Shown: one piece after another, positions 3,597 to 55,199 of the stretch
Numbering within the stretch: the stretch's first letter is position 1
Layout: the number at the start of each line of letters is the position of its first letter
Source: Chara braunii
Lineage: Eukaryota; Plantae; Charophyceae
Reading direction: 5' to 3'
Length of the DNA stretch: 64,000 nucleotides
NCBI GenBank assembly: GCA_003427395.1
Contig: BFEA01000004.1
Location: forward strand, 4,065,328-4,129,327
Position numbers and translations under genes: made by a program
The notes under the pieces: model-generated
The model's database searches: none
The model's input: the letters and a program-made list of their open reading frames with translations, nothing else
Told to the model about the DNA's origin: nothing

Positions 3597-6476
3597 GGGC
3601 CTCGCTCCGCTCCTCACCACATTCAGAAAAGACAAAAAACTGTGAAAAAGGGCCTCGCTCCGCTCCTCACCACATTCAGAAAAGACAAAAAACTGTGAAA
3701 AAAAAGAAAACAAAGGAAAAAAAAAAACAGACAAAAAATGTGGTGGTGTAACTTTCCATATTCTAGCGGAAGCTTCATTCTCATCTTGGACATTTGGTGA
3801 GTAGTGGAGCGAGGCCACCGTAGTTGCACCGCTTGCCATCTGCAAAGATTTTGTGAATGCATCTTCACAAACCTCATGTACAAATGCATTCAATATTTCG
3901 AAGGGCCTGGTCACCAAATGCACAAAGGACAAAAAATATGCCTGTGTATTTCTCCATGTGCTTGCGGAAGATTCATTCTCATCTTGCACATTGGGTGAGT
4001 GGTGCGGTGAGGGCCAAAATCTTGGGAGATGGCGAGTGGTGCGCCTGTTGTCGGTTTTTTTATTTTTTTATTTTTTTCTCTCGTTTCGCTTAGGGCAGCG
4101 GCCTTGAGGTATCGTCATTACCCCAAAAAGAAGAAAAACCATCATCATTGAGAATTTTTGTTTTTTCTTTATTGTTTGTTTTTTTTCTGTTCATCACCGT
4201 CCGATTTCGCATATAGACCTCGACGTTTGGCCTCGCTCCATCACTCACCACCTGCACAACAGGCGAAGAATATGGCGGTGTATCTTTCCATGTTCTAGCG
4301 GAAGATTCATTCTCGTTTTGCACATTCGGCGAGTTGTGGAGCGAGGCCCATTGCCCTCCAGTGGGTGGCAGGGAGAGAACCCGCTGGTCTTATGTTCGGG
4401 CTTAGGAAGGATGAACCTGATCGTGAAAGTGGTCAGGCTCGTGATTTCTTATTTAGGGCGTCGCCAAATTTGTAAAGAATATATTTGCCGCTCCAACGTG
4501 GAAAGAAACGCCGGCCGCCATAGTTTTTTTTTTTTTTTTTTTTCAAATATTTGGTGAGTGGTTCGGCGAGTTCCTCCGCATCCCTTCACCACCAGTGGGG
4601 CGGACGTAGAAAATCGTATGGGACAGGACCTCCTTTTTTTTTTTTTTTTTTTTTTTTTGGACAGGACCTATTGGGCCTCTCTCCACTGCCCACCACATGC
4701 ACAAAAGACAAACCGTTGTAATCTTCCCGTGTTCTAGCCGAAGATTCATTCTCATTTTGCACATTTTGTGAGTAGTGGAGCGAGGCCCATTGTATGTCAC
4801 CTCGCCAGTTTTCCTTCTTGCTTTCCTCTTCTTTTCCGAAAAAAATTGAACCATTTGTTGATTTATGTGTGTCATGCTAATCTTCTCTATGCCCCAAAAA
4901 TAAAAAATCTTCTGTGTATCGTCCCTTGTTTTTGTTTTTTTGCGCTCTTTTTTTTTTTTTTAGTTGTCAGATCTCTCTTGGCCTTTACTATGATGTAACT
5001 TTTTTTTTTTGGAAAACATGTCATAGGGCCTCGCTGCACTACTCCCGAAATGTGCAAAACGAGAGTGAATCTTCCCGTAGAATATGGAAAGATACACCGC
5101 CATGACTTTTGTCTTTAGTGCATGTCGCGAGTAGTGCAGCGAGGCCCATATTATACAAGCCGGGAAACAGGCCCGGCGTCACTTACAAAAGTATGCGGTG
5201 CCACAGAGTGAGCGAGGCATCACCGGCCAGGCGTCCCTTACAAAAGTATGCGGTGCCACAGAGTGAGCGAGGCATACCGGCCAGGCTCAAAGAGGGGAGG
5301 GCCTTCTAGAATCCCAAAAAGAAAGGAGAAAGAGCACATTAGGCCCACACTTTTGTTTTCTTTCCTTGTTTATACTGTATGTTTCCAAGGACTTCTTTTT
5401 CCCTGTTCCTTTCCTTTTTTTTTGTTCTTAGAAATGATCTCACTTGTTGGCTTGATACTGGAGGCGGATAGGGCCTCGCCGCAGCACTCACCAAATGTCT
5501 GAACTGGATTGGTATGACGTAGCACTATCTTGCATGTATGTGACCGCATTTACAGCCGTACCCGTATGCATGTGGCGGCAATTCCGTCCAGAAATAAGTG
5601 AAAAAAAAACAGTTCCAGTGTGAGTATTCGGAGAACTGCCGGGTCAACTGAAAACCCAAATAGGAGTTGCGTATGTGAAAACCCAAATAGGAGTTGCGTA
5701 TGTGTCGCGCTCCACTATGCTCACCACATGCACGAAAGGTAAGAGCTTAGGAGTTAAAAACAAAATGAAAGACAATAAAAGAAAGACAAAAACTATGCCG
5801 GTGTATCTTTCCACATTTTAGCAGAAGATTCATTCTCATTTTGGTAAAAACTTACGAGTTGAAAACAAAATGAAAGACAAAAACTATGCTGGTGTATCTT
5901 TCCACGGTCTAGCGGAAGATTCATTGTCATTTTGCAAATCTGGTTAGTAGCCGCGCTCCACTACACTCACCACATGCACAAAAGGTAGAAACTTACCAGT
6001 TGAAAACAAAAAAGAAAGACAAAAAAAGAAAGACAGAACCATGCCGGTATATCTTTCCACGTTCTTGCGGAAGATTCATTCTCATTTTGCAAATTTGGTG
6101 AGTAGGGGACACGACGGCAAGGATGGTCCTCACACCACTACTCACCATGTGCGGAAAAGACAAAATATGGCAGTGTATCTTCCCATGTTCAAGCGGAAGA
6201 TTCATTCTCATTTTGCACATTTGGTGAGTAGTGGAGGGATGCCCAATGCTAGGAAATGGTATTTCTTTCTTTCTTTTTCCCTTTCTTTTTTTTTTTGGTT
6301 TCTTTTTTTGAATCTTTTTTTTTCTTTTTTACAACTCTGTCGTTTTTATTACGGGGTCCAGTGCCCAAGGCTATGGGTCTCCTCCACTGGCCTCCACATG
6401 CACAAATGACAAAAAATATGGCGCTGTATCTTTCGGTCTCATTTTGCTCATTTGGAGGGTAGCAGAGCGAGGCCCT
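3597..6476. mobile_element. Cluster of ~115-125-bp MITEs (TIR GGGCCTCGCTCCACTACTCACCA, 3-bp TSD; Tourist/Harbinger-like)
   Basis: More than ten full or partial copies with core GCGGAAGATTCATTCTCATTTTGCAC. Clean copies: 4673-4788 (TSD ATT/ATT) and 5026-5147 (inverted, TSD ATA/ATA). Further copies near 34120-34600, 42440-42572 and 54125-54215. Confidence 0.8.
4839..4925 (-). pseudogene. U6: U6 snRNA-derived fragment with internal deletion
   Basis: Minus strand CATAGAGAAGATTAGCATG^ACACACATAAATCAACAAATGGTTCAATTTTT. The GCCCCTGCGCAAGGATG stem is deleted between two ATG repeats. A second partial, GGGACGATACACAGAAGATT, lies at 4905-4925. Confidence 0.7.
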
Positions 6477-6659
6477 GTACATCACTTCAGAAAGGGACGG
6501 ATGGGTGGCAGAGCTCCATCCCTGGAGTTCAAAGGGGAGAAAGAAATCTAGGTAGTAAAGAAAGTTTACGCTGAAAAAGGAACCAATAGTGACCGAAAAA
6601 GTGGTGGTCTATCAATCCGTGCCCAAGCTGGGTGAACGGCCCAATGCTCGAGGAACCAG

Positions 6660-7170
6660 GGGAGAGGTCCCACTAGCAAAGAGAATTCGATGAAGCTCCT
6701 GAATGTGGACATGTTTGAAGCAGAGATGCAGAGAAGCAGTTCAATCTCTTTCTGCACCTTTCCACAAACACTTCCAGATTGGGGCGTTCAATCCAAATTC
6801 TCTATGCTAGAGGGACCTTGCCTCAGAGAACAAATGGTATGAGTTTCGTCTGATGTGGACGGAAACACAAAATTTTAGACTCTTTTTTGCTTTTTCTTCT
6901 TTCCCTCTGTGGGGCAACCTCCTGCGAAAGTGAGAACGGGCATTGTTTTGATTTTGAAATAAACATGCAAGATTCCCCCTCCCCAAAGAAAAAACATGTG
7001 CCACTCTTGTTCCAAAACTGGGGCGAGGTCCCACTAGCAAAGAGGATTGCATTGATCGCCAAAACCTGGATGTGTTGTACACAGAGATGCAGAAAAGCTG
7101 AGCAATCATGATTTTCTGCATCTCTCCTCAAGCACGTCCAGATTCAGGAGTTAAATCCATTGATTTGCTA
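6660..7170 (-). repeat. Two diverged ~140-bp copies (6660-6800, 7020-7165), possibly LINE zf-RVT relics
   Basis: Both start GAGGTCCCACTAGCAAAGAG and contain CAGAGATGCAGA. Minus-strand peptides are W.C...LHLC..H....ILFASGTSP. Confidence 0.4.
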
Positions 7171-10036
7171 ATGGAACCTCACCCTGTGCCGTGCTTGTAG
7201 ATGTTTAGTTGTGGTTTAGAGTATCCATGGGTCCCCACCATCCGATCTCGATATCTCACGACCACATTGTGACCAGCTTCAAAAATACTGGAACCCACAC
7301 TAAACCTCCCCAAGTGGGGCATGACCCCCGGGACACACTTGTGCAGGGGTACACTTGCGCCATGCTTCGTAGCATCTGATGCTTGCGCTGCTCTTAGTTG
7401 TCTCCCTCGTTGCACGTGTGTGTTGGCCCTTGTAGCTATCTTTCCCACGACATGGCAAAGTAGTTTAGTGGAGGGAGGAGGACGACGGGAGGAAGAGGTG
7501 GAGGTGCAGGAACTGGATGAGGAGGCAGAGGAGGACAGTGTAATGGACGGCTTCTTCCATCAAGAGTAACTTCTGCTGGAGGATGAGGAGGAGGAGGAGG
7601 AGGAGGAGGAGGAAGAAGATCTCGTGGAGGGTCTTGGAAGGGGCCGCACTCACTTGGTTGATGACTGGGTGCTGAACCTCCTATACATGCTTTGTGTCAT
7701 TGTGATCGTGTTCTCCTGCTAACGTTCTAATGCCATTCCTGCTACCGAGTCAATCTAACTTTGGTCCACGGTGTACAATCTAAACTGCTGTTGTGGGCAT
7801 CTTAAATGGACCAGGTGCAGTCCTGGCGGCCCATCGTAATCCTCCAACCCTCCCAACAGCCCACTGCTCCTATTGAGCCATCACTCTACATCCCTCCACC
7901 CCTCCCAGCAGCCCACTGCTCCTATTCAGACGTCACTCTACATCACACGGTTCAAGTTGCACCGCGCTGTGAGGACATGTGCGCCTCTGATGGTGGCTGG
8001 ACCCTGCTTGTCTGTGTGTACCAGATTGCATGCCACAGAACACACGGCAGAGCTACCATGGCGTGCCCATGCCATGCCGTGGAGGCTATCACATGCTGCC
8101 AGTTTGCGGGACGCGGCCCATAGTCACAGCAACACAGTCACACTAGCACTGCAACTGCATCCAGACCTAGATGCATTTGAATGTACTCACGTCCAGAGCT
8201 CAGTCGAAAAAGTCCTAGTGTGAGTATGGCCTAAGGGCCTCTCGAGATGAAATGAAATGAATGCCGAAGTCGCGAGCACCCACGAAATCTAGAAGCTTGC
8301 TTTTCTTGACCGCTGCACCACACACAAAGAGAGAGAAAACGAACCTGCCACAAACGCTATGTGACAGGAACAGGAGGAAAGAGAAAGAAAAGATGTGCGT
8401 TATGCATCTGTCGTTTTCTTCGTCACTTGCATGAAGAGCCTGCTGCTGTACGACATTCTCGAAGCACCCTAAAAAACCGCGAAGGTGCAGGCGGGCGCTC
8501 TTCAGCTGCTCACAACTGGCTCCTCTGACACTTACCTGACATTCTTATGAACTCAAGTTCTTCTCGCGTAAAGGCAACACAGCCATAGGCAGAGGACACC
8601 AAACTCGGATGTGGACTGGTTTTGTGTGTAGTGCGGCAAGGCCCTAAAGCTCGACATGCTGAAGAAGTCTGCGGCCACAGATTAGGACAACTCACAAGCA
8701 CGGAAAACGCCCCAAAAAAGAAGAAAAAACTTGCAAACAAACGAACTTGTTGCCGTCCTGGAGAACCCGCATGCAGCCATACTCGTGTCATGCTGGTGCG
8801 CTCATCATCGTTGGAGAGGACTTCTGCTGAAGAAGACGTCGGCTGGCACAGATCAAACTGCAGTGGCCGACCGGCACGGGTCAAGCTGCAGTGGACGCCA
8901 CTGTCCTACAACGCCATGCCAGGATCTTCCTTTCAACCAATGCCATCGTGTGTTGTCAACGGTTCATCGTCACACAGCACAGGAAATGAAAACTAAAGAA
9001 TGAGTGTATCTACCCACAGAAGGTGGCAAGGTATGTTTGTTACTAACAAATGAATATCCCCACTTTGTGCAGGAAGATGCACTTGATTTTTTTCTTTTCC
9101 ATTTCGTGTGTGCTTCTGCTTGATTCTTTGTCGACCCCAGGTAGGCCCCATGTAGGGTGTCCACAAAAGACCCATGGACAAAGCTGTTGAAATATCCGTA
9201 AATCCATATGGTGAAAGTCACCACACCATTGTCGAAGCATGCAAATTCTGAATGGCTGTCAGAAAGTTTTCAACGGCTGCCATTTCGACAGTTGCCCCCT
9301 CCCTTCGCCACACAGCACTGTTGAAGTGTCGGAGGGACAAGCAACGAAGAAAAGCAAGTGTAGAAGGGATGGCCGCAGAAGAAAAGGGACAATACGGCTG
9401 CGATCATGAAAGTGGGCGTTTGGCCGATAGCTGCTCAAAGGGCGGCTACCAAACATAGGCCCGTCGCAGCTGGGCAAAATGTCACGGCTGTCTATCGAAC
9501 TTGGTTTACTTGCAACTTTCTAAAGATTTTTGACAGCGAACATTGAGGATGGCCCAGAGGCCAACTCACATTGACGGAGGCGGTGAACTCAGCAGGCAGT
9601 TACAGGAGTGAAGGGCGAAAGTGTGGTATGCGTGGTGGGTACTAGCGGCGACACCGGAGAGGAGAAGTCAGACTTTGTGTGTGCGTGTGTGCGGAAATGA
9701 TTTTCTGCGAGAGATGTGCACGCCCTATACTGTTGACATCAAACGCAGATCGCGGAACAAAACACTAGCAGCGCGGGTACAGTAGAAGCAAGCAGTAGAA
9801 GCTAGGCTGCTGGAGAAACGCTAAGTGTTCAACAGTTCCGTGTGCAAGTCAGGGAATCAGGATTGTGAAATGGTGGTGCCACCCGCCAAAATGGTGAGTA
9901 ACTCCCTGTCATGGCCGGTCCTAGCTGGTCCTGGCCTTGTCGTGTAGGACTCACCTGTGTGGTGAGTGCTGTCAAGTGTGGTGAGGGGTGGAGTTGTGAC
10001 CTCCTTTCGATGTGAAAGTCCGGTGGTGAGTACTCA

Positions 10037-10349: not shown

Positions 10350-13300
10350 GAATACCCTCCTCCCGTCGTATCGAACCTGAACTTGGGCTGAACGGCCCAG
10401 AATAGTCGCTGCCAGAAAGGCGCTCCGCTGAGATGAAGGGCACGAGCTTGGACGCATGGAATATTGGTGGAAGGGCAAGTGAGTGGTAACTTAGATGACG
10501 AACGAGGGCCCGTCTGGCTGGTCACCAGCAGGCGAGATAATGCGCCAAGGCCCCATCCATTTCGGAAGGACTTTGCGAGAGATATCTTGCTTGAGGCTGA
10601 ATTCCGCTGTGGACATCCAAACGAGATCGCCCTCGCCGAATGGATAAGGTAGATGCTGGCTTGACGACTCATGCGGATCTGCGTCTTGTGCATCTTGTTG
10701 CATGCCTTGACAAGCAACTCTTGCATGCGTCGAATGAAGGCACCGTGGTCGTCTTTTGCGATCTCACGAGGAACGACGATGTCCATGGGAAAATGGGCCG
10801 GCTAGCCATGCTCAAACTGGAACGGGGAGATAATGATAGCTGGGTGGAACGATGAGGTGTATGCCATCTCGATGTCGGGAAGCCGCTCAACCAGGTCATT
10901 TTGGTCGGGACGGATGGCCATGCGAAGAACCTGTGGGGTTTGATGCGCTCTCTCTATTTGGCCGTCATCCTACACCTTGACAAGCAACTCTTGAAAGCGT
11001 CGAATGAAGGCACCATGGTCATCGTTCACGGCCTCACGAGGAACGACGATGTCCAAGGGAAAATGGGCCGGGAAGCCATGCTCAAATTGGAAAGGGGAGA
11101 TACTGATAGCTGGGTGGAACGACGAGTTGTATGCCATCTCGATGTCTTGAAGCCGCTCAACACAATCCTTTTGGTCGGGACGGATGACCATGCGAAGAAG
11201 AACCTGTAGGGTTTGATGTGCTCTCTCTATTTGGCTGTCGGATTGCGGATGGCCAGCGAAACTCGGCTTGAGGGAAGTCCCCATGCAACTCATAAGCTTG
11301 GTCCAAAAGTCGAACATAAACCGGGTGTCGCGGTCTCATTCGATCTCCTTGGGAAAACCCTTGGTCTGTACTCAACCGGCAAAGAAGATAGGGATAAGGC
11401 ACAAACATTGCAAACTTGGTGAGGTGTTTGACCACCGTGAGTATGCTGTTGGAGCTGGACTTGTGCTTGGGAAATGACCGTGTGATGCCCATGGCGATTG
11501 ACGTGCGGTGTTCCTTGGGAATTGGCAAGGGCCGCAACTCTCCAAATGGGCGGTGGTTGTGGGGCTTGCAACGACGGCAAACCTCGCAAGACTTGCAGTA
11601 GCGGGTGACTTCCGCAATAAGGTCGAGCCAATATAAGTGTTGGCGAAGGTGACAGATCATGGAGGCGACGCCGAAGTGTCCCATGGATAAAGCGTCGTGA
11701 AACTCACCAAGAAGTCGTGTAAAGTTGTCGATCATTAGGCACACAAAGAAGGCCCTTCCCTCGTGAATGGAAAAGCAAGTAACTATCTTGGATCCGATAG
11801 TGCGATATCTTCGAGCATTGTGCATAGCGCTCGCGATATAAGGGGCCGACTGATAACCGCGAATGAAGTGGCGCCGCATCTCATCGTCGATCTAGAAGGT
11901 GTGGTAAACGGCGGCGCAAAGGTCCAGACGTCGCAAAAAAGCATCCGCAAAACGGTTTGACTTGCCCTTGATGTGGTCGGGGACAACATCGAACTAGTCG
12001 ATGTAAGCCATCCAACGCGCAATCGTGCTATTGGCCATGGCTTGGGACTTATAGAAGACCAACGGGTTGTTGTCCTTGACCCACTTGAATTGGCGTCGAT
12101 CTAGAAGAAAGTGCCACCATCGTTTGAGAGCATGAATGAAGGCTAACAACTCCTTCCGTGTCTCATCGATAGAATGGACAGGGGGTACTTTCTTGGTAAA
12201 GAACTCGACGGGGTGCCAATCCTCGCTGCCGTGTTGCTCGAGGACGACATCGTTGTCGTAGCTGGATGCATCCTTGGTGATATGTGTGGGCAAAAGAGGG
12301 TCGTAGATATGCAAGACCAGTGCGCAAAGCAAAGCATCTTTGATCGTGACAGAAGCTGCTCGAGCCTCGTTGTCGAAGTGAAACATTCGGTCCGCACATT
12401 GAAGCTTAATCAAATTGATCGCGATCGAGCCCTGGATGAAGTGTTGGTAGTAAGTGGTGAGCCTGAGGAAGGAACAAACATCTGTGACATTCTTGGGTTC
12501 CGACCACTCTTGGATGGCTTGAATCTTGGCGTATGAATTCGCATTTCTTGTGGTTGGCTTGGTACTTGGAGCGACGAGGAGTCTCCAGTACGCTACGAAG
12601 ATGCTTGAGAGGCTCGTCCAATGTCTGAATATAGGCCAGGATGTCGTCGAGGTAGATGAGCATGACTTAGTCCAACATAGAACGAAACTCGTTTGTCATC
12701 ACCACTTGGTATGTCGTCGGGGCATTGGTGAGGCCAAAAGGCATGATAACCCACTTGAAATGCCTATACCACATCTTGAACGCGGATTTGTAGTGGTCTT
12801 GCGGGCGGATTGAAATCTGGTGGTATTTGGACTTCAAGTTCAACTTCGAGAAGAATTTCGCACTGCCCAAGCGCTCTAGAAGATCGTCGATGCTAGGAAG
12901 AGGTCCTTCATTCTTGACGGCTTGCTTGTTTAGTCGGCGTAGTCGATGCAAAGTCGTAGATCCTTGTTCTTCTTTCGAACGAAGAGAATGGGCGCACCAT
13001 AGAGCGAGCTACGAGGGTGAATCCAACCCTTTTCGAGCAAGTCGTCGAGTTGCGCACGGAGAACCGTGAGCTCCTCCTCGCTCATACGATAAATGCAACC
13101 TTGGGGTGGGACAACACCCTCTTCTAGAATGATCTCATGAGAGACGGGGCGATCCGGAACAACTCCCGTATGTGGCTCGAAGTCATCGCCAAACTCGTTG
13201 AGCAAAACCGAAGCATGCAAGGATCCGAAGACGCATCCGTTGGTGAAGAGTCGGGCTTCGCTACGATTTGGAGAAAACAAATGCCGATCTCGTTGATCCC

Positions 13301-23100: not shown

Positions 23101-26100
23101 TGAATATACATGGAGTTGCCGCAAGCCGCTCCGGTCGAGTGCGCCAACCATACCTCTCGCGAGCCTCTACGACAGGATAGGGCCTACGCGAGGAACAACA
23201 TTCCTCCACCTTACGGGAGCTGTCACCTCCCTTCGGTGGGCGTATCCCCGCCGAGCTACCAGTCCACAGTACGTAAGCTGATCAGCTGCAATCGTAGAGG
23301 TGGACCAGCCGAGGGCGTTTCTCGTTCGTTGTAGCATAGGGGGTACGCGCGGTATTACGCCTCTATCGAACCTGCACGTGAACCGACATCTTGGGGGGCT
23401 GAGGTCCCAAGCGCCATTCGTCGGCGGTCGACTAGGACGCATCCCACACTTCACGCGCACACCACTATAAAAAACATTAAAAAAAAAAAAAAACCACATA
23501 CGCACATACGTATACATATACAGAACGACAGAGAACCAAACAACGCGACAACACTCCTAGTCCCTTAGTAGTCATCCCATAACTCCCGGATGCGGAAATT
23601 GGATAGGAGTCGCGCGCGAGACTTAGTATAAAACCGTGCGGACGCAGGGCTAACTCATATCAACTCGCAATGCAAGCGTATGCAAGCGGTCTCAGTGATG
23701 GCGTACCATGTAGTACCTATACTCATGCGGTCCTCGTTAATGTCGAGGGTCGCGTTCGACACTCAAGTGTCGGCTGACATGCGCCTTGAGGGATTGATCT
23801 CTCGACGCTGGACAACCGCCAAGTGCGGTTGAGAACCACACCCTCGTCTTCACCCTGCAGAGAGTGGGTGGTACACAGGTTCATACCTGTGGTGGCAATC
23901 GTTTCTTATTGCCCTGGAGACCAGCTCCATTATCTAGGGCCTGTGGAAAAGTCAAGGGGTTTGACTTTGATGGATGCCACGTACTACAACGTCCAGCTAT
24001 AGAAATTCTAAAGAGCAAAGGCTTAAAAGGAAAAGTCTCATTTCCCTCGAAAACATAATCTGTTTAACCCTTACGCGCGATCATAGTGGGCCGCACGAAA
24101 CACTCAAGATATATATATTCACATATATATAGAGGGTTATTAATATAGGACAATCACTTCTCACAGTCATAGTGGGACTCCTCTCGGCCATATATATATG
24201 TATGTGAGCACAGACAGTCAAATCCAAAGTCCCTGTTATCAGTGATAACATAAGGTGATCCTCGTAGGAACAACTAAATTTTGCCCAAGTCCTGAATCAA
24301 TTGATCAAGAGGACCTGTAACACAAGACAGGTCAATCCCCAAGCTAAATCTATAAGTCCATGGAGAATAATCCCCATATCACGATCTCACTCAAATCAGC
24401 TTAATTAACTAAGCCTAAGTTTACCTCTAAGCAAGTGCCCAAAGAAAGGTAGACCCTGGCAGAGTCTCCTCTATATAGAGTGCATCGCCAGAATAGCCAC
24501 CTGTCAAAACATAATCTAACTCCTTTAAACTAAGGAAATTTCGGCAGCGCTTCCCGTAGGAAAAGTGCCTTTCCAAGATTTATATCAGCCCGAATATAGA
24601 AACAAAAATAATCTTCAACTTTCCAAAGTCAAATTTTGTCTAACTCCTTGAATTAGCAAAAATTTGGGCGGCACTCCCTTCAAAAAAGGAGACTTCCCAG
24701 ATTTTTACTGAGCCATATAAAATTAAGTCAAGTTGAACTTTGAAAAGTCAAAAGTTGACTAACTCCTTGGATTTGCAGAAATTTCGGCAGTGCTTCCCGT
24801 AGAGAAAGTAGCTTACCAAAATTTATACAAAGCCAAGTATAACAAAAAATCCCAGAAAATGCAGAAATTGACCTAAGTAAAATAAACGTAGCTCATAAAA
24901 TGCAGGAATTGAAACTGACTCCCATGGGTCTAGCATGTGGAGAGCAACTAAAGCAGCTACCTATCAAACTGAAATTCAAACCAAGTAGTGGTCACACTCA
25001 ATCACATGCAAGGCAAACCACAAAGGTAAGTACTCTCACCATCCCAAGTCCGTAGTCGATTCTGTCTCCTACGCGCAGCCTTCAGCGTCGTCCCCGACTA
25101 AACCACCAACCCATCATTAAGACTTACGGCGACATCACGCTCGCACCGCCCCGAAACCTCAAGCTCTAACCTTCAATCGCCCGTTTTCGTCAAGAGACGG
25201 GTAGGCTAAGTGATTTCTACTCTTTCCATAGCTGGTTTCGAAAAACCTCCGCGCAGTCTATGCACTCACTAACTCTTTTCTTACTAACTTTCCCTCCATT
25301 CTGGTCTCACCATGTAACTCGCAATACATCAAAACCTCTAAAACGAAACTTCTCTCGCTCGATTTCATCCAGAAATGAGCGAGATACGCATTCCCTTCTC
25401 CTCATCTCTTTCGCTCCCGCCATCGCCAACACACTCATTTTCTTAGTACAACCTAATCTACTAACTTTTGACTAAAACTAATAGCGCTATCACGCTCGCG
25501 ATGATCGAAAACCCCCGTTCCACACTTTATTCCTCTTGATTCCATTGAGGATCGGCCGAGAAATCATTTTTCCCGTCTCTCTCCCTCACCCGTTTCTCCG
25601 TATGCGGCGCAATCGTTTTTTTTCGCATCTCCTCAAACACTAACTCCCTTCCAACTCCGACTTCACAATCGTGTTCGCCTAGGCCTAAACCCCCTATCCA
25701 CCACCCTACTTCGTGTAAGTTTGCTAAGAAGCGGTCGAGAAGAATCATCCCTGCCCCCGTCGTTCCTTTATCTTCCACCTAATTGCCTTCATCGTTCACT
25801 TTCGAATGTACCTAGCGCAGATTCGCGTCTAGGTTTATACTAATTCCTCCTTTCGGTTGATGCTACCGGCTCTCCGCTCTCTTCTGTTGATGTCGCGCTT
25901 CGCATCACTGCGCAGCGTCCATCAGCGCCATCCCCCCCTGGCTACGCCCTGCTCCGACATCGGTCACCACCTTTCAGATCGTAACGAGCACGCTTACACT
26001 CACCTCTCACAGCGGATTACGAACGGGGCACCAACAGACTGCGCCCCGCCTCAGGTACGATTACCCCGAGGGGTCCTTCGATGGTAAACCGATTATCTGA

Positions 26101-27480: not shown

Positions 27481-30061
27481 CACCGACAACGCCGCTCGTC
27501 TCATCCGACAATCACACTTCCCCTTCCACAACTCATCATCCAAGTCACTGTCGTCGGTGCGCTCGTCCTCTTCGTCCTCGAGCTTCTTCGGAATCTTTCC
27601 CTTCGGTGTGTTCACGAAGGTACTTCGCCGCACCAGCTCCTCATCCGTCTTCTCAGTTTCGTCCTTGGGGGCCTTCAAGATAGATCCATCGTTCTCGTCT
27701 GGCTTTGGAATAGCCTCGAAGAACGAACTCCACAGATCAACGTAGCCCTCGCCGTTGGCACCACTGTTGTTGGCAACACGCAGTAGTTGCATGTTCCAAT
27801 GGATGTACACCAGCTTCTGCAATGTTTCGGGCTGCAAGTTGTTCCTCCTTTTGGAATGCACGAAGTCCATGAATGACCAATTCCTCTCAGCCGGGGTTGC
27901 TGTACTCTACATGCCCATCACTTTGATGGCATTGGCCTGCAAGTCGGGGACATTACGCCATAAGTCGCCCACCACTCTGACGACCGGGGTTGCTGTACTC
28001 CACATGCCCATCACTTTGATGGCAATGGCCTGCAAGTCGGGGACATCGTTGCCATAAGTCGCCCACCACTCTGACGGTGTGAGCTTCTCGCAATCAGCCT
28101 TCGCCTCGGGCTCCCACATCTTCTTGTCCTTTCTCTTAGGCCCTTTCGGCGTGGGCGCCTTGTGAAACTCGTGCAGGTCACCCAAAACCTCAAGGTGGTC
28201 TGGCCCTTTCCAAGCACCTCCAACCTGTCTCTGCAGGTAACGCATCGCGTTCTACACAATTGCACTGTCCCGATCATAAAGCCACCGTGGACTTCTCCTG
28301 CGCGGGTCTAGAAGAAACGCCAGTGCATGAACAGGGTGCCGCATCATCTTCACACGATCTTTGACTTTGTCCATGACGCTCGCCCGCTGCTCCTCAGTGA
28401 GAACCACGTGAGTCAGTTTCCTTTCAGTCAGGTCGTTGTATTCGACGAGGTTTGTTGGTGATGTTCCATCCCGATCCATCCTCTTCAGAAGCTGTACAAC
28501 GGTTCCATCACATCGACCACCTTCTTCAACTCCGTCCACCAGCCGTCTCTCCTCAAGGTGAAGTACACCAGGTCCGATTTCGACTTCAACTTCGAAGTGG
28601 ACCAACGCATCCCCGTCCACTATGCTGCATTTTTACGATCCACCATATCCAACAACACTGCCCTCCTGTTCTGAAGCCTCTCCAAATCATGTACACTGAC
28701 CCGAACCGAACTTCAGTGGGACGAAGCAATGTCAGGGAATCGCCCATGGACATCATCAGGCTATTCGTGTAGTGGTGGTTCCGGATGAATTTTGCAATCG
28801 TGTGACCTCTCTTGACAGTGCTCTTCACCCAGTCTAGCTTGTTGAATCTCGCAGCAAAAGGCTGGAACAATGCGCAGCGCAAGGAACCCATGGAATCCTT
28901 GAAATGTCTTTGTTAGTGCGGCGCTCGAGAATGTGAGCAGCCTTCTTGTTCACCTTGACATTGTTGGTGCAGATCGCGTTGATGCGATGCACCTCTATCT
29001 CCCTCATGATCCGCTCCCACAACTTTGCCAACGCCTGCGCTGTTTTCTTCCTTGCGGTCATTGACACTGTGGCCACGAGAAATGCACCTTTCTCCCCCGT
29101 TGCCAAGAAGTTCACGATAGGGCGCTCTTGACGGTCGGATGAACCGTCCGTGATGAATGTACAGCCTGATTCGTCCCAACAGGTTGTCAAAGGATGCACT
29201 TGCTTTTGAATATGCAAGAGCTTGACCTCTGGTCGTGCATTCGCCACTTCCAAGTAAACTTCGTGGAGCTTTTGCGCCGTGTCAAAATTCAGGAAGTTGA
29301 ACGCAATACCAGCACGGAACATCGCCTCCGCCCACACTATATCCAGCTTCTTCTGTGCATCATTGTCCACCCATCTCTTGATTGATGCCTGCTGCAATGA
29401 TGCCACCCTCGTGTTTGACCTTGAACCTTCCGCAAGCCCTTCGTCTGCAGCGGCAACCGACTCTGTTCGCGAAGCTGTTTTTGGTGGTGCCATCCCCGCA
29501 ATAGTTGGTGGTTGCGGCTCCTCGTACCCGCAAACGAGCGGCTCCACCTCTTGAGTCTCCGAAGCAGGGCCCCCCCGTTCCGAAATGCCATGCAACTGCC
29601 TATAGTTCTTAAGGAGGTACCTCGTCTTTTTGTCGGTCGGCAGCACCTTCGCACGGGCGACCACGAGCTTGTGTACGATCTCCCCTGTCCTCAAGGGACA
29701 CGACTTTAACAACTTCAAAAAATGTTCCATTGCCCTTGTGCTCGTGCCCCTCCAAATTTGCGTGCATAGCCGACACTTCCGCCAATACTCTCGTCGACCC
29801 TTCGGCAGGGCTTCTTGACCTTGTATAACATATTTCCACACCTCCCGGGCGCGCTGCAGTTGGTGTTGCCCCTGTGTCATCCTGAGGAACAAACAGAGAG
29901 GGGTATGACGCCGGGGTGGGTTCCTTTGCAGTCACCCCAGATGTGGGAGCACTAGAAATGGCACTGGCCTTTCCTTTGTCTGTTGATCCTGAAGGAGGTC
30001 TCCTCCTTCCGGATCCGCCACTGCCACCACCTGCTGCAATGCCACTGCTGCCACCCGCCAT
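27481..30061 (-). pseudogene. hAT transposase (BED zinc finger, DUF659, hAT dimerisation domain), frameshifted
   Basis: VWKYV...KCRLC...AMEHFLKLLKSC (BED), GCTFITDGSSD, WVPCAAHC, LLRPTEVRFGS, PVHALAFLLDP, SEWWATYG.DVPDLQAIAIKV, AERNWSFMDFVHSKRRNNL. A ~93-bp tandem duplication lies at 27891-28077. Confidence 0.92.
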
Positions 30062-31650: not shown

Positions 31651-32229
31651 TCTCTCGCTCTCTCTCTCCTACTAACCCACTTACCTTGGCGCGGCAGCGC
31701 GTCGGCGGGCGTCGACGGGCGTCGGGGGGTGACTACGGTGTTGGCGGGCGTTGGCCGGCGATGGCGGAGCTCCGTCGAAGTGACCTGACAGGGGCCGAAG
31801 TGAGGCGTCGGGGGCGAAGTGACACGTCGGGCGGGAAAGGCCACGGGGGAGAGGACGAGGGCCGATGATTTCCGTTTTGAACAATTCAAAATCGCGGCCC
31901 ATCTGGGCGGTCGATCCTGGAGATTGACGGCGCAGATGGGCCCTTATTTCAAATTGTTGAAATCGGGCCTACCGGCCTTTTTTTTTTTGGTTTGTTGGCC
32001 CCACGCTTTGAAAACGGCCCGAAACCCCCCTCTTTCTAGGATGCGCTGGGGTCGCCCGGTGGCCAACCGGGCAGGCGGGCTGCCCCCCCCCCCCAAGGCG
32101 ACGAACAGGTCGCCGGGCGGCTCGGGGTTCAGCCTAGGTTTTTTATGATGTCAACAAGCTTGGTATTGCTTTTTCTTGCTTGACGAGGCACAACATTTTT
32201 TTTTCCCTTTCCTGCCCAGCTCAAATGTG

Positions 32230-32322
32230 GGCTACCAATCGGGCTGTCCGCGTCACCTTGCTTGCTCGGGTGGCCTGGCTGGGCAAGAACCAGGGAAGGT
32301 CCCCGCAAAAATAAAAAAAGAA
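32230..32322 (+). repeat. ~90-bp A-tailed SINE-like repeat (other copies 33713-33808 +, ~46420-46530 -)
   Basis: Shared GTCACC...GGCAAG..CCAGGGAAGGTCC followed by an A-rich tail in three places. Confidence 0.55.
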
Positions 32323-32925
32323 AGCACGATACTATAATGACAATAAAAGAGGCCTGGAAGGCCGTCCTGTCCAGATTCAGGTAATTGAATTGGTTGCGCT
32401 TAAACCATGGGTACGATCCGGACGTCCGGACCGCCGTCCAGACGGTCTGGATTCAGTCTGGACTCCAGACGTCCGGTTTGGAAGGTCTGGACCTGCCAAA
32501 ATTCGAGGGGGGGAAAGAAAAAAAACGGTCCAGGACCCTTCCCCATTGAGGAGCCAAGCCCCTAAAATTGTTTGGGGGGGGTTTCAGGCCCGTTTATGCT
32601 TTTTTGGGGGGTTCGGACATGCTCTCTCTCTATAATGATTTATTAGACAACCCCAATTTTTTAATTATAAATAATTCATTACCTTTTATTAGTTTTTAAA
32701 GTTTTTTTTAATTGCTTTTTTATGGTTTTTGACTTGTAACTCAAGTTTGGTTAGGAATTCTAACATGACTCTGAGGCAAAAGTGGTTTGCATTGTTATTC
32801 TGCATAGCATACTTTTTTTTCAGATTTTTTATTTTTATTTTTTTTAATGGTTCGGACATTTCCGGACCTGTTCAGACATCCGGACCATCGGGGTCCCCCC
32901 ATCTCCAGAGGGTCTGGAAATGTTT

Positions 32926-32960
32926 GGAAGTGATTGAGCAATTACAACCAGGAGGTGGGC
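32926..32960 (+). pseudogene. rnl: Mitochondrial LSU rRNA fragment (NUMT)
   Basis: GGAAGTGATTGAGCAATTACAACCAGGAGGTGGGC resembles plant mitochondrial 26S GGAAGTGATCGAGCGATGACAACCAGGAGGTGGGC. Only 35 bp. Confidence 0.5.
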
Positions 32961-33239
32961 GGCTGTCATGCCGGTGGCATTGCCGGGTAGTTGACGGTAC
33001 CTCGCTTGAAAAGCTTATGAAGCTTTGAGATGGGATAGTCAAAGGAGAATTTGAATGGGGAGCAACTCGTATTCTGCCAAAGCCTGGGAAGAAGAAAAGC
33101 GTCCGCTTATCTCACCTTGTATGCCGAAGGCGGTGTCATACCTTGAGGTAATAAAAAAACTCAAAAAATGAAGTCTCCATCATAGAAAGCGGTACTTAAC
33201 CAGTGGGCCTCGTTTATTAGAAAGAGCCGCCAAAATGTC

Positions 33240-33402
33240 ATTGTACAATAGGTGACCTAACGGCCGCCCGACTAAGCATGCCAATAGTGGCAAAATTCAT
33301 GTGAGCTACTGAAGACTATGCAATGATCTTTTTCAGATCGATTTGTCTTAATGTAGTTACGAAAGTATATATTATAGCAATCACACTAAGAGTATGAACA
33401 AA
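33240..33402 (-). pseudogene. nad4: Mitochondrial nad4 exon fragment plus 5' end of its group II intron (NUMT)
   Basis: FVHTLSVIAIIYTFVTTLRQIDLKKIIA*SSVAHMNFATIGMLS is NAD4 with Tyr changed to a TAG stop at 33316-33318. It is followed at 33269 by GGGCGGCCGTTAGGTCACCTAT, the intron start I recall for nad4i976. Confidence 0.9.
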
Positions 33403-33480
33403 TTTTAAGTCTGTCATGTTTACCCGGAGGAGCTGATAAGAAACCCGAGAAAAGCCAGCCCGTTTTATCATAGAGACAAT

Positions 33481-33571
33481 TTTGGGCAAAAGAAATTCCC
33501 AGGTGTGACGGGCGGTGTGTACAAGGCCTGAGTACATATTCACCGAGGCATGCTGATCCGCGATTACTTGC
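33481..33571 (-). pseudogene. rns: Mitochondrial-type SSU rRNA 3'-region fragment (NUMT)
   Basis: AATTCCCAGGTGTGACGGGCGGTGTGTACAAGGCCTGAGTACATATTCACCGAGGCATGCTGATCCGCGATTACT spans the universal 1392R region and has the plant-mitochondrial GTACATATTCACCG variant. Confidence 0.88.
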
Positions 33572-33878
33572 TACTTCGCCAGTAGGGAATTCCGGACGTT
33601 TGGAAACTACCAGACACGGGTCAAGTTCCATGTCCGAAAATGTCTGGGTCCGGGTCCGGCGTAGCCATGGCTTAAAGAATTAGCCTTTTAAGAAAAAAAG
33701 AAAAAAAAAACTAGGCTACCAGCAGGGCCGCCAAGGTCACCCTATATTCCTGGATGCCCAGGCCGTGCAAGGACCAGGGAAGGTCCTAGCAAAAAAAAAA
33801 AAAAAAAAGGACATGAAAAAAATTACGAAAAAAAAACTCGGAGCGCAGTTAAAATCAGGGTCGGCAAAAACAGGCTCG

Positions 33879-34248
33879 GAGGTACTGGTGGTTTAAACCA
33901 CCAGTACCTCGCTCAGCTATCTAGTCCGAGGCTCGGACTACCGGTAGCCCGATCATCCCCGAGCCTCAGACTTTATTGCCGAGCCTTGGAATAAAGTCCG
34001 AGCCTCGGACAATCAGTAGTACACAACCGAAAAAGAAAAAAACGAAAAAAACAACAAAACGTACAACATTCTGCAAAAAAAAGTGAAAAAAAAAAACAAA
34101 AGAAAATCAGACAAGCCCAACGAGAATGAATCTTCCTGGATAACGAGGGAGATTCATTCTCGTGGGAGGNNNNNNNNNNNNNNNNNNNNNNNNNNNNNNN
34201 NNNNNNNNNNNNNNNNNNNNNNNNNNNNNNNNNNNNNNNNNNNNNNNN

Positions 34249-46275: not shown

Positions 46276-47699
46276 CCAGTTTGGTGCGCAACCTGTTTGC
46301 ATGCATATGAAGTGTGAATGAGAGCGAGTCTGATTGCAAATCTTCTAAAAAAGAATCAATGATTTCAGACTTTTTTCAGATGCAAAAGTTTATTTTTCTG
46401 CACAACGTAGTTTTCTTTTTTTAATTTTATTATTATTATTATTATTTTTTAACAGGGACCTTCCCTGGCCCTTGCCCGTCCGGGCCGCCCTGGCAACTAA
46501 GGTGACCCAGGTGGCCTGGTTGGTAATGCAGGCGGTTATGCTTGTTTTTTTATTTAGATGTTTTTCTTTTCTAAATAAAACAAATGACATGCTGTCTTGT
46601 TACAGTCAGCTTGTTTCATCAGGCGTCTCAGCTTGTTTCAGTAGGCATCCCTCTTGTTGTCCTTGTTGCTGTTTTTTTCTTTTCCTCCCCCCTTTTGTTA
46701 ACTGGGAGGAAAAGTAGGGGTCGGGGGGAAAGAAGGAAAGCTCGTCCTCCTCTTTTCTTTTCTTTTTGTTGAAGCTTGTCCTTCTGTGGGAATGAAGGAA
46801 AAAGAAAGAATGAGATAATAGAACGATGTAATATGACAAATAATAAATAAAAAGATTATAATAAATAACAAGCAAAATAGTAAATAACATGATAATGATT
46901 TACTACTAAGAAAACAAAAGTACAATTAACAAAATAATAATAATACTATAGCATGTGCACGTGTATGGGAGCTTTGTTTTTAACTCTTCAGATTGATCAT
47001 CATTGCTAGGGAAGATGGAAAGAAGTCAAGGAACGGCATAGCAGTATTGTGGTTTTCAACTTTTCAGGGCTTTTTTTCCCTTAGTTTTCTTAGTCTCCCT
47101 CCCCCACCCTGATATCCACTTGGGCTTTGGTTTTTGCCAATTTGTGGTGGGTGTTACTTCTGAGTTACGATGATCTCCTGGTGGATGGAAAACAAAAAAT
47201 CGAATGGAGTTTTGGAAAAAGAAAGAAAAAGGAAGCTGGACAACATTTCCCCCTCTGCAAGTGCTTTGTTGTATGATGAAAGCCCTTCTCTTCACCACCT
47301 CCCTCCCCCTCCCCTCCCCCCTCCCCAAAACCCCCCTCTCTCGTCCACTCCCTGTTGCCTTTTCCCAGTGTTCACCCTAGTGGAAGAGAAAACTGCCTTG
47401 AAGTCTCCATTGAACTTTCTCAAATTGGTTTTGTCTTTATGTCCCATTTTTAAAAAAAATTGATATCTGCAAACAAAATAACTTGACAAAGGGATACTTT
47501 TTAATTTCTTCATATGCTGCCACTGAGGAAACTCGTCCTGACCCTGTTGACCCTTTTGAGCTGTCTTGTTATTGGGAATCGTCTTACGGTAGTTGACTGG
47601 CCCACGAGCGGCTCAATTGTTTATTTTTGTTATTATTATCGGCTCAATTTGCCACTGCAGTTTTTCTAGATTTTGTGATGTGATGACGCAGGGGGAGGA

Positions 47700-52525: not shown

Positions 52526-53696
52526 CATGAGGTTTTCTTGGGACTCTGTCCCAGGGCTACAGGCTATTGAGATACTTTTGAGTTTCCTTGCTGTTTTTTT
52601 CTTTTTCTTTTTTGCAAAGTTTCCCCAGTTCTACGTCCACTGTTGTGCTCTATGCCTACTGAAGTTTGGGAAGCTCAGGTTGTCAACAAGTTTGCACATA
52701 TATAACAGCCTACCGCTTTTGTCACTTGTTGGGCACTGCAGCCCAGAGGAACTTTGGTCTGGATAAAGCCGGATGTGGTTGAATGATAGGGAACTTGTGC
52801 AGTGCTTTCTGTTGGAGAATGAGTGTATGAGTGTACTGTATACACAATATCCTTGGATTCCCTTTTGCAACCGAGCGTGTAGTTCGCAATACCAATATAC
52901 TATGACCACATCATCCGAATACTTTGGCTCTCAACCGGGAACCCACTGATAGCCAAAGTTGGCACGCTTTTTCTCTTGTGAACCGCCGCAGGCCTCTGCA
53001 TCACATGGGCTTGCTGGTCCAAGGCTCACCATACTCAATTGGACTCACTGAAATGACAATGTCAGACTGGTGGGGGAAGGGGTTTAATCTGGTCAACGAA
53101 AATGCCAAAGTGTTCGGGAATTAGAAACTAATTTTGCGAGTTTGGTGAGTAGTAGAGCGTGTGTGGTCCCTGCGCCAGCTTTGGATGGAAAATAGTGTCA
53201 AGCACGTGCATTGGGGCTGATTTTCAGATAGTACATAGTACTGTTGATAAGCAAGTCAAGCCACCAGCCCTCCAGCCCTCAAAAAAACTGAACCGTCGGG
53301 GGTGCGATCTTGCCAGCTGCTGGCAAGCATTCTCCTCTTGTAGGGACGAACGGCGATCTTGCCTTAGCTACGATCCGGACCACCAGACAGGGATTCGGAC
53401 CGTCTGTGGTCCGGGTCCGGATCTCGATCCGGATGTGTGGGCCCCAGCCCAACGGGCAAAATTTTTTTGGGTGGTCCAGGGCGTTTGTTCACGCCCTGGG
53501 CCGCCCCAAAAAAATGGTGCCTGTTTTTTTATCCCTCTCACCAACGATCCGGAAGGCCCGGAAAGTCTACCAGGGGGTTTGGTCACTTTGGTTTTGTTTC
53601 CTACCTGTGGCGCAAGTGTGCGGTGCACCTGGAGCAGTGCGGTGGTCACCAATGCGCAAAAAAAGAAAAAAGAAAAAAAGTCGCTGTTATGTGTGA

Positions 53697-53744
<48 letters not shown>

Positions 53745-54109
53745 NNNNNNNNNNNNNNNNNNNNNNNNNNNNNNNNNNNNNNNNNNNNNNNNNNNNNNNN
53801 NNNNNNNNNNNNNNNNNNNNNNNNNNNNNNNNNNNNNNNNNNNNNNNNNNNNNNNNNNNNNNNNNNNNNNNNNNNNNNNNNNNNNNNNNNNNNNNNNNNN
53901 NNNNNNNNNNNNNNNNNNNNNNNNNNNNNNNNNNNNNNNNNNNNNNNNNNNNNNNNNNNNNNNNNNNNNNNNNNNNNNNNNNNNNNNNNNNNNNNNNNNN
54001 NNNNNNNNNNNNNNNNNNNNNNNNNNNNNNNNNNNNNNNNNNNNNNNNNNNNNNNNNNNNNNNNNNNNNNNNNNNNNNNNNNNNNNNNNNNNNNNNNNNN
54101 NNNNNNNNN
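53745..54109. other. Assembly gap
   Basis: Run of N after (GA)n. Confidence 1.
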
Positions 54110-54550
54110 GGAAACGAAAGAAAGAGTTGGAATGAATCTTCTGCTAGAACATGGAACCATACGCCGCCATATGTTTTGTCTTTTGTGCAAGTAGTGACGA
54201 GTGGGGCAAGGCCGTTAGGGCTGCTGCTCGTAGGAAAATGAAACAAAAGAAAAGAGAGAGCTACGGTAGCAAGTAGTTGTAACTTGTGACCCATGCTGGA
54301 ATGTAGACCTGACTTCGGATCCAGAACACATATTGCTGGCCTGCTCCACTCTCACATGAAATTTGCCGAACGTCTCTTGAGATAGTGGACGCTTGCAGAT
54401 GCACTACTGGGGTCCTTCGGGAAAAAGACTATTCAATAAGGAATACGTGGGCCGATTTTTTTTTTCTTGTACTCCTCTGTCGTCCTCCTCTCTTCTTGTC
54501 TTCCTCCTCCTCGTCTCCTCCCCCTCCTTTTTGGGTTATTTATTTTTTAT

Positions 54551-54690
54551 TTGGTCCACTTCCCCATTAATGCATGTCATCTTGGCGCAGGGGCCATTCT
54601 AATCTTGTCCTTGGGACGTTCATTAACATTGGAAGGAGAAGATTAGCATGGCCCCTGCACATGGATGACACACTTTAACTGAGAAGTAGG
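54551..54690. pseudogene. U6: Head-to-head pair of U6 snRNA-derived copies (minus 54551-54606; plus 54607-54690)
   Basis: Plus copy GTCCTTGGGAC...ATTGGAAGGAGAAGATTAGCATGGCCCCTGCACATGGATGACAC lacks most of CGATACAG. Minus copy AAGATTAGAATGGCCCCTGCGCCAAGATGACATGC...GGACCAAAT. Confidence 0.85.
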
Positions 54691-54699
54691 AGTAGAGGC

Positions 54700-54760
<61 letters not shown>

Positions 54761-55199
54761 CTTCTTCTTCTTCTTCTTCTTCTTCCGGACAATATACGAG
54801 ATCCGGACCGGTCCGGAAATGCTGGAATATTCTGGTTTTCTGGAAGTCTGGATAGGCCCGGGAGGTCCGGGGTCCGGTCCGGCGTAGCTATGGATTTTAT
54901 ACAGTGTTAACCGGTGTGTCTACCCAAGGTAGCCGGGTAACGGTCCGGTGGTGTGGGCACAACTTCGGACAGGAAAAGGTGTCAAGCACCTGCCTTGGGG
55001 CTGAACGGCCGAGAATAAATGTCACTGTTAATAAAGAGATTTGATGAATAAATGTTTGTGGCATTTTCCGTTGCAAAAAACAGAAGTTGAGTCGAGGAAT
55101 GAATGATTGGGGGGTAAGACCCAAGCCTGGTGGATCCAGTCCTAGGGGGTCTGCCGTCTGCCCACCGGAGCATCCCAGGGTAAAGTGGATGAGGCACAG

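Follow-up and report, generated by a model that had tools for sequence, protein, structure and literature searches.

A mosaic of mitochondrial snippets between the ends of a hAT-like transposon in the nuclear genome of Chara braunii

Introduction

Complex NUMTs, or mosaic organelle insertions, were reportedly described in plant nuclear genomes by Noutsos et al. in 2005. In plants, the fragments of complex NUMTs are joined through blunt ends or through microhomology of 1 to 7 bp (PMC6215612), and the mosaic organelle insertions (NORGs) of Oryza show microhomology, blunt ends and fillers (PMC12129026). Such insertions consist of non-contiguous organelle fragments in mixed orientation, which enter at a nuclear break and later decay, and in these points they are like the mosaic described here, which is the cargo of an element, E1, in the 64-kb stretch of Chara braunii DNA that we analyzed (the window). 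The E1 cargo is unlike complex NUMTs in that its pieces are unusually small (19 to 162 nt, most of them 31 to 38 nt) and densely packed (about 11 in 659 bp), it resides inside a DNA transposon, and no plastid piece was identified in it, the mapping reference being mitochondrial.

Filler DNA is also said to occur in internally deleted Ac/Ds-type hAT elements, where Rubin and Levy in 1997 and Yan et al. in 1999 reportedly ascribed it to abortive gap repair. As in those elements, both arms of the non-autonomous, hAT-like E1 are kept, with unrelated filler between them. However, the filler of Ds elements is generally short and templated on nuclear or element sequence close by, whereas that of E1 is mitochondrial, and Ds elements are deletion derivatives of longer elements, which E1 may or may not be. 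Like E1, Pack-MULEs and other Pack-type elements are non-autonomous DNA transposons with foreign sequence enclosed by their ends, but their cargo consists of nuclear gene fragments, and what defines them is the existence of copies that moved together with it; E1, in contrast, carries organellar confetti and is known from one copy. Capture of mtDNA at double-strand breaks is reported for yeast by Ricchetti et al. in 1999 and, reportedly, for tobacco by Wang, Lloyd and Timmis in 2012. There, as appears to be the case in E1, short mtDNA fragments, sometimes several, were end-joined into a nuclear break, but those breaks were induced at defined sites, whereas that of E1 would be natural and old and holds many more fragments.

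Compared with these systems, the E1 mosaic is most likely a case, mapped in fine detail, of a familiar process, the use of organelle DNA as filler at a sealed nuclear break. Its many very small snippets are of interest for end joining and for organelle-to-nucleus transfer, and its position inside an element that keeps both ends bears on the question of NUMT multiplication by DNA transposons. The finding is an ordinary one if the E1 cargo exists in a single copy.

Materials and Methods

Six-frame translation revealed a nad4 exon on the minus strand that contains an in-frame stop and continues into an intron. A mitochondrial reference was entered with a 30-aa nad4 query, which gave six matches in a representative protein library, followed by a profile search, which was dominated by land-plant Nad4. 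The Nad4 ORF P0031 has as its C-terminal tail the same intron read-through, RAAVRSPIVQ, as the window; among algae, the intron concerned (nad4i976g2) is known from Charophyceae (PMC10012718). The reference used for mapping comprises metagenome contigs of 53,961 and 80,657 nt together with shorter contigs from metagenomes and read-set assemblies, and it amounts to about 73 kb of mitogenome, with about 10 to 15% of the mitogenome left out. Its gene order, established with the help of Rfam annotation, is cob, nad1, cox3, cox2, nad6, atp6, rps12-rps7, nad2, nad4, nad5 and nad9, then atp1, the maturase ORFs, nad3, nad7, the ribosomal-protein cluster, atp9, tatC, rps4 and nad4L, and finally rnl, rrn5, rns, sdh3/4 and cox1. 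The shorter contigs encode Nad2, Atp6 and Cox3 proteins identical to NP_943686, NP_943689 and NP_943692 of Chara vulgaris, and the two long contigs come from a closely related Chara-type alga. Since the reference is Chara vulgaris-type and related Chara, and not the species' own mitogenome, the divergences and exact junction bases given below are approximate.

Chara-specific SSU and nad4 DNA patterns found no match in metagenome, viral or prokaryote contigs, and a general plant-type SSU pattern retrieved only an unrelated algal mitogenome (L002-L005). Two of its contigs from metagenomes, L002 and L005, carry nad5-nad4-nad2-nad6-trn-rns-trn-rnl and LAGLIDADG ORFs; they have the plant-type SSU motif CCTGGGAATT in common, yet their identity to the Chara SSU piece is 88 to 89%. 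In the Chara-type reference itself, a 180-aa ORF with a D5_N domain (primase/helicase N-terminal) lies between rps4 and nad4L (L021 14896-15438, equal to L025 13403-13945) and has the appearance of an insert of plasmid or viral origin.

Results and Discussion

E1 occupies positions 32406 to 33669 (about 1.27 kb) of the window. Its left inverted end is the 10-bp CATGGGTACG (32406-32415), and its right end, CGTAGCCATG at 33660-33669, reads CATGGCTACG on the minus strand, so that the two match at 9 of 10 positions. When the 64-kb window was searched for CATGGSTACG, exact matches were found only at both E1 ends, in inverted orientation, which bears out the 10-bp terminal inverted repeats of the first-pass annotation. 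The subterminal TCCGGAC repeats that it had proposed are equally real, with 6 of the 13 sites of the window falling inside E1, and both arms hold repeats of this type along with the CpG-decayed variants TCCAGAC and TCTGGAC. The left arm, inverted end and subterminal repeats together, spans 32406-32620 on the plus strand, and the right arm consists of the 85 nt from 33585 to 33669 on the minus strand. As for the target-site duplication, the left copy GCTTAAAC (32398-32405) and its right partner GCTTAAAG (33670-33677) match at 7 of 8 positions, with all six bases of the core, CTTAAA, in agreement. All four termini of E1 and of a second element, E2, read CC(A/T)T(G/A)G(G/C)TACG, so the outer C/G may be part of the inverted repeat; if it is counted there, the E1 duplication becomes a perfect 6-bp CTTAAA. 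The 7/8 match proposed earlier holds, and the length of 8 bp is less certain: the duplication is 6 to 8 bp and not securely 8.

Between the arms, the left part of the interior (32621-32847) is AT-rich (24.5% GC, no CpG), is bracketed by the 11-nt motif GGTTCGGACAT, and has no significant match in the mitochondrial reference. It is followed by an inner cluster of subterminal-type repeats (32848-32925), which lies directly left of the mosaic.

E2, a second and diverged family member on the plus strand (53363-54892; 53355-54900 with its flanks), has the same ends, CTTAGCTACG at 53363-53372 and CGTAGCTATG at 54883-54892, and similar repeats, namely TCCGGAC-type repeats and CpG-decayed variants in both arms. 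The left arms of E1 and E2 align with each other, and their interiors differ. The window contains two instances of a 19-nt pattern made of the end and the first repeat, one at the left end of E1 and the other at that of E2, against an expectation of 0.10. The shared ends and left arm, together with this excess, argue that E1 is a real terminal-inverted-repeat transposon. The E2 flanks, GATCTTGC and GATTTTAT, agree at 5 of 8 positions, all three differences being transitions (chance probability about 0.03). The interior of E2 includes (GA)n and (CTT)n arrays and a long poly-T stretch, and it is interrupted by a run of N (about 53746-54109) that marks an assembly gap. A further candidate end of the family, at 25937, was rejected.

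The superfamily of E1 is plausibly hAT, which is the most likely assignment on its sequence features. Elements of the hAT superfamily have 8-bp target-site duplications and short inverted ends that usually start with YARNG. With regard to the duplication, the 7/8 match with its perfect 6-bp core in E1 and the 5/8 match in E2 are compatible with 6, 7 or 8 bp. The inverted ends of the two elements measure 10 to 11 bp and start with CATGG, CTTAG or CATAG, with a T at position 3 as opposed to the purine of YARNG. Multiple short subterminal repeats, another hAT trait, are present in both arms of E1 and E2, and no hAT transposase with ends of the E1 family was found in the 64-kb window. The hAT reading of the first-pass annotation therefore keeps its short ends, its subterminal repeats and a possible 8 bp, and lacks the YARNG start and a matching transposase in the window. 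A piggyBac-like assignment was tried and rejected: a TTAA duplication with 12-bp ends suits E1, but the corresponding E2 flanks would be TCTT and TTTT. A hAT transposase remnant does lie on the minus strand at about 27.9-29.9 kb, 2.5 kb left of E1, with DUF659 at 28837-29892 and a weak Dimer_Tnp_hAT at 27910-28245; a search of its surroundings gave no E1-family ends. To its right, at 30.1-31.7 kb, there is a strongly purine-rich stretch with (AGA)n arrays.

The cargo lies entirely between the E1 arms, at 32926-33584 (659 bp), close to the roughly 670 bp (32920-33590) first proposed; the mosaic stands and its bounds were adjusted. We mapped nine secure snippets of 31 to 162 nt, with identities of 86 to 97%, to at least eight mitochondrial loci, and two more snippets tentatively. 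The secure ones score 47 to 261 bits in BLAST, as opposed to a maximum of 34.6 bits in 200 dinucleotide shuffles of the cargo against the same reference. E1 and its flanks outside 32926-33584 gave nothing above 33 bits.

The first snippet (32926-32960, plus) is internal to rnl and is 97% identical over 35 nt to L025 5574-5608, within the Rfam LSU match at 4076-8597. The second (32960-32990, plus; 93.5% over 31 nt) derives from the 3' terminal exon of rnl (L025 10801-10831, equal to L021 18040-18010), and its source also falls within an Rfam LSU match (model positions 2655-2912). The third (32991-33108, plus) belongs to a group II intron RT/maturase ORF, with 86% identity over 125 columns, including small indels (L017 12892-13016); this ORF of 782 aa lies downstream of atp1 and carries RVT_1 and Intron_maturas2. 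The next 32 nt (33109-33140) have no match in the reference of about 73 kb. A fourth snippet (33141-33175, minus; 97% over 35 nt) comes from inside atp6 (L012 4028-4061), and it is followed by a tentative piece of the cox1-sdh4 spacer (33172-33203; 80% over 45 columns, L027 8286-8330), whose 41 bits compare with the shuffle maximum of 34.6. The fifth is from atp1 (33209-33240, plus; 97% over 32 nt, L017 10923-10954).

The sixth and longest snippet (33237-33398, minus; 95.7% over 162 nt, L007 3762-3601) spans a nad4 exon/intron junction, with 128 nt of exon (33271-33398) and the first 34 nt of nad4i976g2 (33237-33270). The exon has an in-frame stop at 33316-33318, derived from a tyrosine codon. 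A further extension into the intron or the upstream exon was considered and rejected, as identity ends at 33237 and 33398. The seventh snippet (33392-33424, minus; 91% over 33 nt, L007 500-532) is from trnL(UAA), annotated as tRNA-Leu(taa) at L007 470-549, and the eighth (33426-33463, minus; 97% over 38 nt, L017 16357-16320) is from a second maturase-type ORF of 298 aa (Intron_maturas2/GIIM). The ninth (33464-33571, minus; 95.4% over 109 columns, L025 3026-2918) belongs to the 3' domain of rns; it corresponds to Rfam SSU model positions 1315-1478 (E 1.9e-11) and is 89.5% identical to E. coli 16S. The last, tentative snippet of 19 nt (33566-33584, plus) matches the 782-aa maturase ORF at 18 of 19 positions (L017 12596-12614; E 0.2, non-significant alone). 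The three loci named in the first-pass annotation, LSU rRNA in plus, nad4 exon/intron in minus and SSU rRNA in minus orientation, all mapped as described to Chara-type mitochondrial contigs, and where it counted at least three loci, the mapping gives at least eight, represented by nine or more secure snippets. An Rfam scan of 32000-34200 gave no rRNA, the SSU piece emerged only once the query was trimmed to the fragment itself, the LSU pieces of the cargo were never recovered by Rfam, and BLAST of the cargo against E. coli found the SSU piece only.

In window order, the sources of the secure snippets lie at about 52.5, 47.3, 22.2, 8.6, 20.2, 14.4, 17.7, 25.6 and 55.1 kb of the 80.6-kb contig, thus spanning 8.5 to 55 kb on both strands. 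This scatter indicates that the cargo is not a simple NUMT; the first-pass annotation had reserved that reading for pieces contiguous in the mitogenome, and on the related Chara reference they are non-contiguous. Gene sense in the same order is + + + - + - - - - (four plus, five minus), and the alternation, together with the intron kept in the nad4 piece, shows that the cargo is not the copy of one transcript.

The junctions of the rnl 3' exon with the maturase and of the second maturase with rns are blunt, and that of trnL with the second maturase has one extra base. The two rnl pieces share one base, or 6 of 7 if a mismatch is allowed, and the junctions atp1/nad4, nad4/trnL and rns/maturase overlap by 3 to 7 nt with one mismatch. 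At the left border, the first rnl piece and the repeat motif of the transposon have GGAAG in common. Exact microhomology is only 0 to 2 nt at most junctions, and the longer overlaps contain mismatches, so that chance may account for part of them. Overall, this pattern points to end joining and agrees with the junctions described for complex NUMTs and mosaic insertions in plants (PMC6215612, PMC12129026).

Decay of nuclear type is also seen in the mosaic. Among the 29 reference CpGs covered by the alignment, 18 are kept, 8 have become TG or CA and 3 changed otherwise, while non-CpG sites differ by about 5%, a figure that includes between-species divergence. The 8 of 29 CpGs now reading TG or CA and the in-frame stop of the nad4 piece indicate that the mosaic has resided in the nucleus for some time. 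Its location is nuclear in that transposon arms and a target duplication surround it and the window also holds nuclear retroelements and an exon of a MutS-type gene.

The best explanation, to which we assign a probability of roughly 70%, is that E1 is a non-autonomous hAT-like transposon in which a complex NUMT sealed an internal double-strand break by end joining. How the break was repaired, and in what order the events took place, we infer as follows. A double-strand break would have occurred inside E1, beside the right subterminal repeats, either at random in a resident copy or through interrupted gap repair after excision. Internally deleted Ds-type elements acquire filler DNA through interrupted gap repair. 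End joining would then have closed the break, with a filler formed by a concatemer of at least nine, and probably eleven or twelve, very short mtDNA fragments, taken in both orientations from sites scattered over the whole mitogenome, and the cargo would since be a decaying passenger without function. The first-pass annotation had offered, as one of two origins, the repair of a broken MITE with a patchwork of mtDNA, and the tiny, non-contiguous snippets in mixed orientation, with their blunt or short-microhomology joins, fit it.

The mosaic sits off center, between the inner repeat cluster (32848-32925) and the 85-nt right arm. When the right arm and the inner cluster were joined and compared with the E2 right arm, the score was 52 (shuffles, 39.2; standard deviation, 2.7), and the opposite orientation scored about equally. 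The hint that the mosaic split a once continuous right arm is therefore weak, the repeat motif being palindromic. The duplication alone is compatible with arrival of the mosaic before or after insertion of E1 at the locus, and it is too short for dating the arrival of the element.

If the mosaic had been acquired before the last transposition, E1 would be a Pack-type hAT that carries and amplifies its NUMT cargo genome-wide, the other origin offered earlier. Its ends and subterminal repeats do look intact, the cargo lies wholly between them, and hAT transposase remnants in the window, such as that with DUF659 at 28837-29892, make sources of transposase plausible. However, the window holds no second copy of the cargo, and E2, the sole relative there, has an unrelated interior, so that mobilization of NUMT cargo gained no positive support and we regard it as unlikely. 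A search of 5.8 billion proteins with a junction-spanning 81-aa ORF found only one unrelated antisense-SSU ORF; this carries no weight on copy number, given that the window's own ORF is missing from the protein collection. The ends are intact enough that the element could move, and nothing shows movement so far. The wider conjecture, that E1 transposed with its mosaic and that charophyte hAT-like MITEs with interiors rebuilt by gap repair repeatedly spread organelle confetti, seems a doubtful one; if E1 did move with its mosaic, this would be a transposon route for multiplying NUMTs.

Template switching by reverse transcriptase among mitochondrial transcripts could also produce a mosaic, as a chimeric cDNA that is then inserted, and all assigned snippets do come from transcribed regions (rRNA, tRNA, mRNAs and intron ORFs). 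Nevertheless, no poly(A) tail or retroposition-type duplication surrounds the mosaic, gene sense alternates along it and intron sequence is kept in the nad4 piece, which makes this origin very improbable. An assembly artifact, with mitochondrial reads placed in a nuclear repeat by error, is hardly credible: mitochondrial DNA is abundant in read sets and there are gaps nearby (the N run inside E2), but the junction overlaps of 0 to 7 nt are far under any assembler word length, and snippets 3 to 14% off the reference, with CpG-type decay and a nonsense change, fit old nuclear residence, as opposed to reads derived from a live mitogenome.

Other features of the window

A 95- to 120-nt A-tailed repeat, like a SINE or a retroposon 3' end, is present in three copies, at 32230-32323, 33714-33807 and 46409-46525 (minus), and two of them bracket E1. 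Right of E1, a perfect palindrome with a 14-bp stem (GAGGTACTGGTGGT and ACCACCAGTACCTC) lies at 33879-33910, and a second hairpin lies just right of E1 at 33949-34016; Rfam yields only chance-level miRNA-like matches for both, and they are possibly a fold-back MITE. Farther away, an integrase zinc-binding domain at 11160-11879 (minus) marks a fragment of a retrotransposon integrase. On the plus strand, an open frame at 592-1620 with MutS domains I and II probably represents one exon of a nuclear gene for a MutS homologue.
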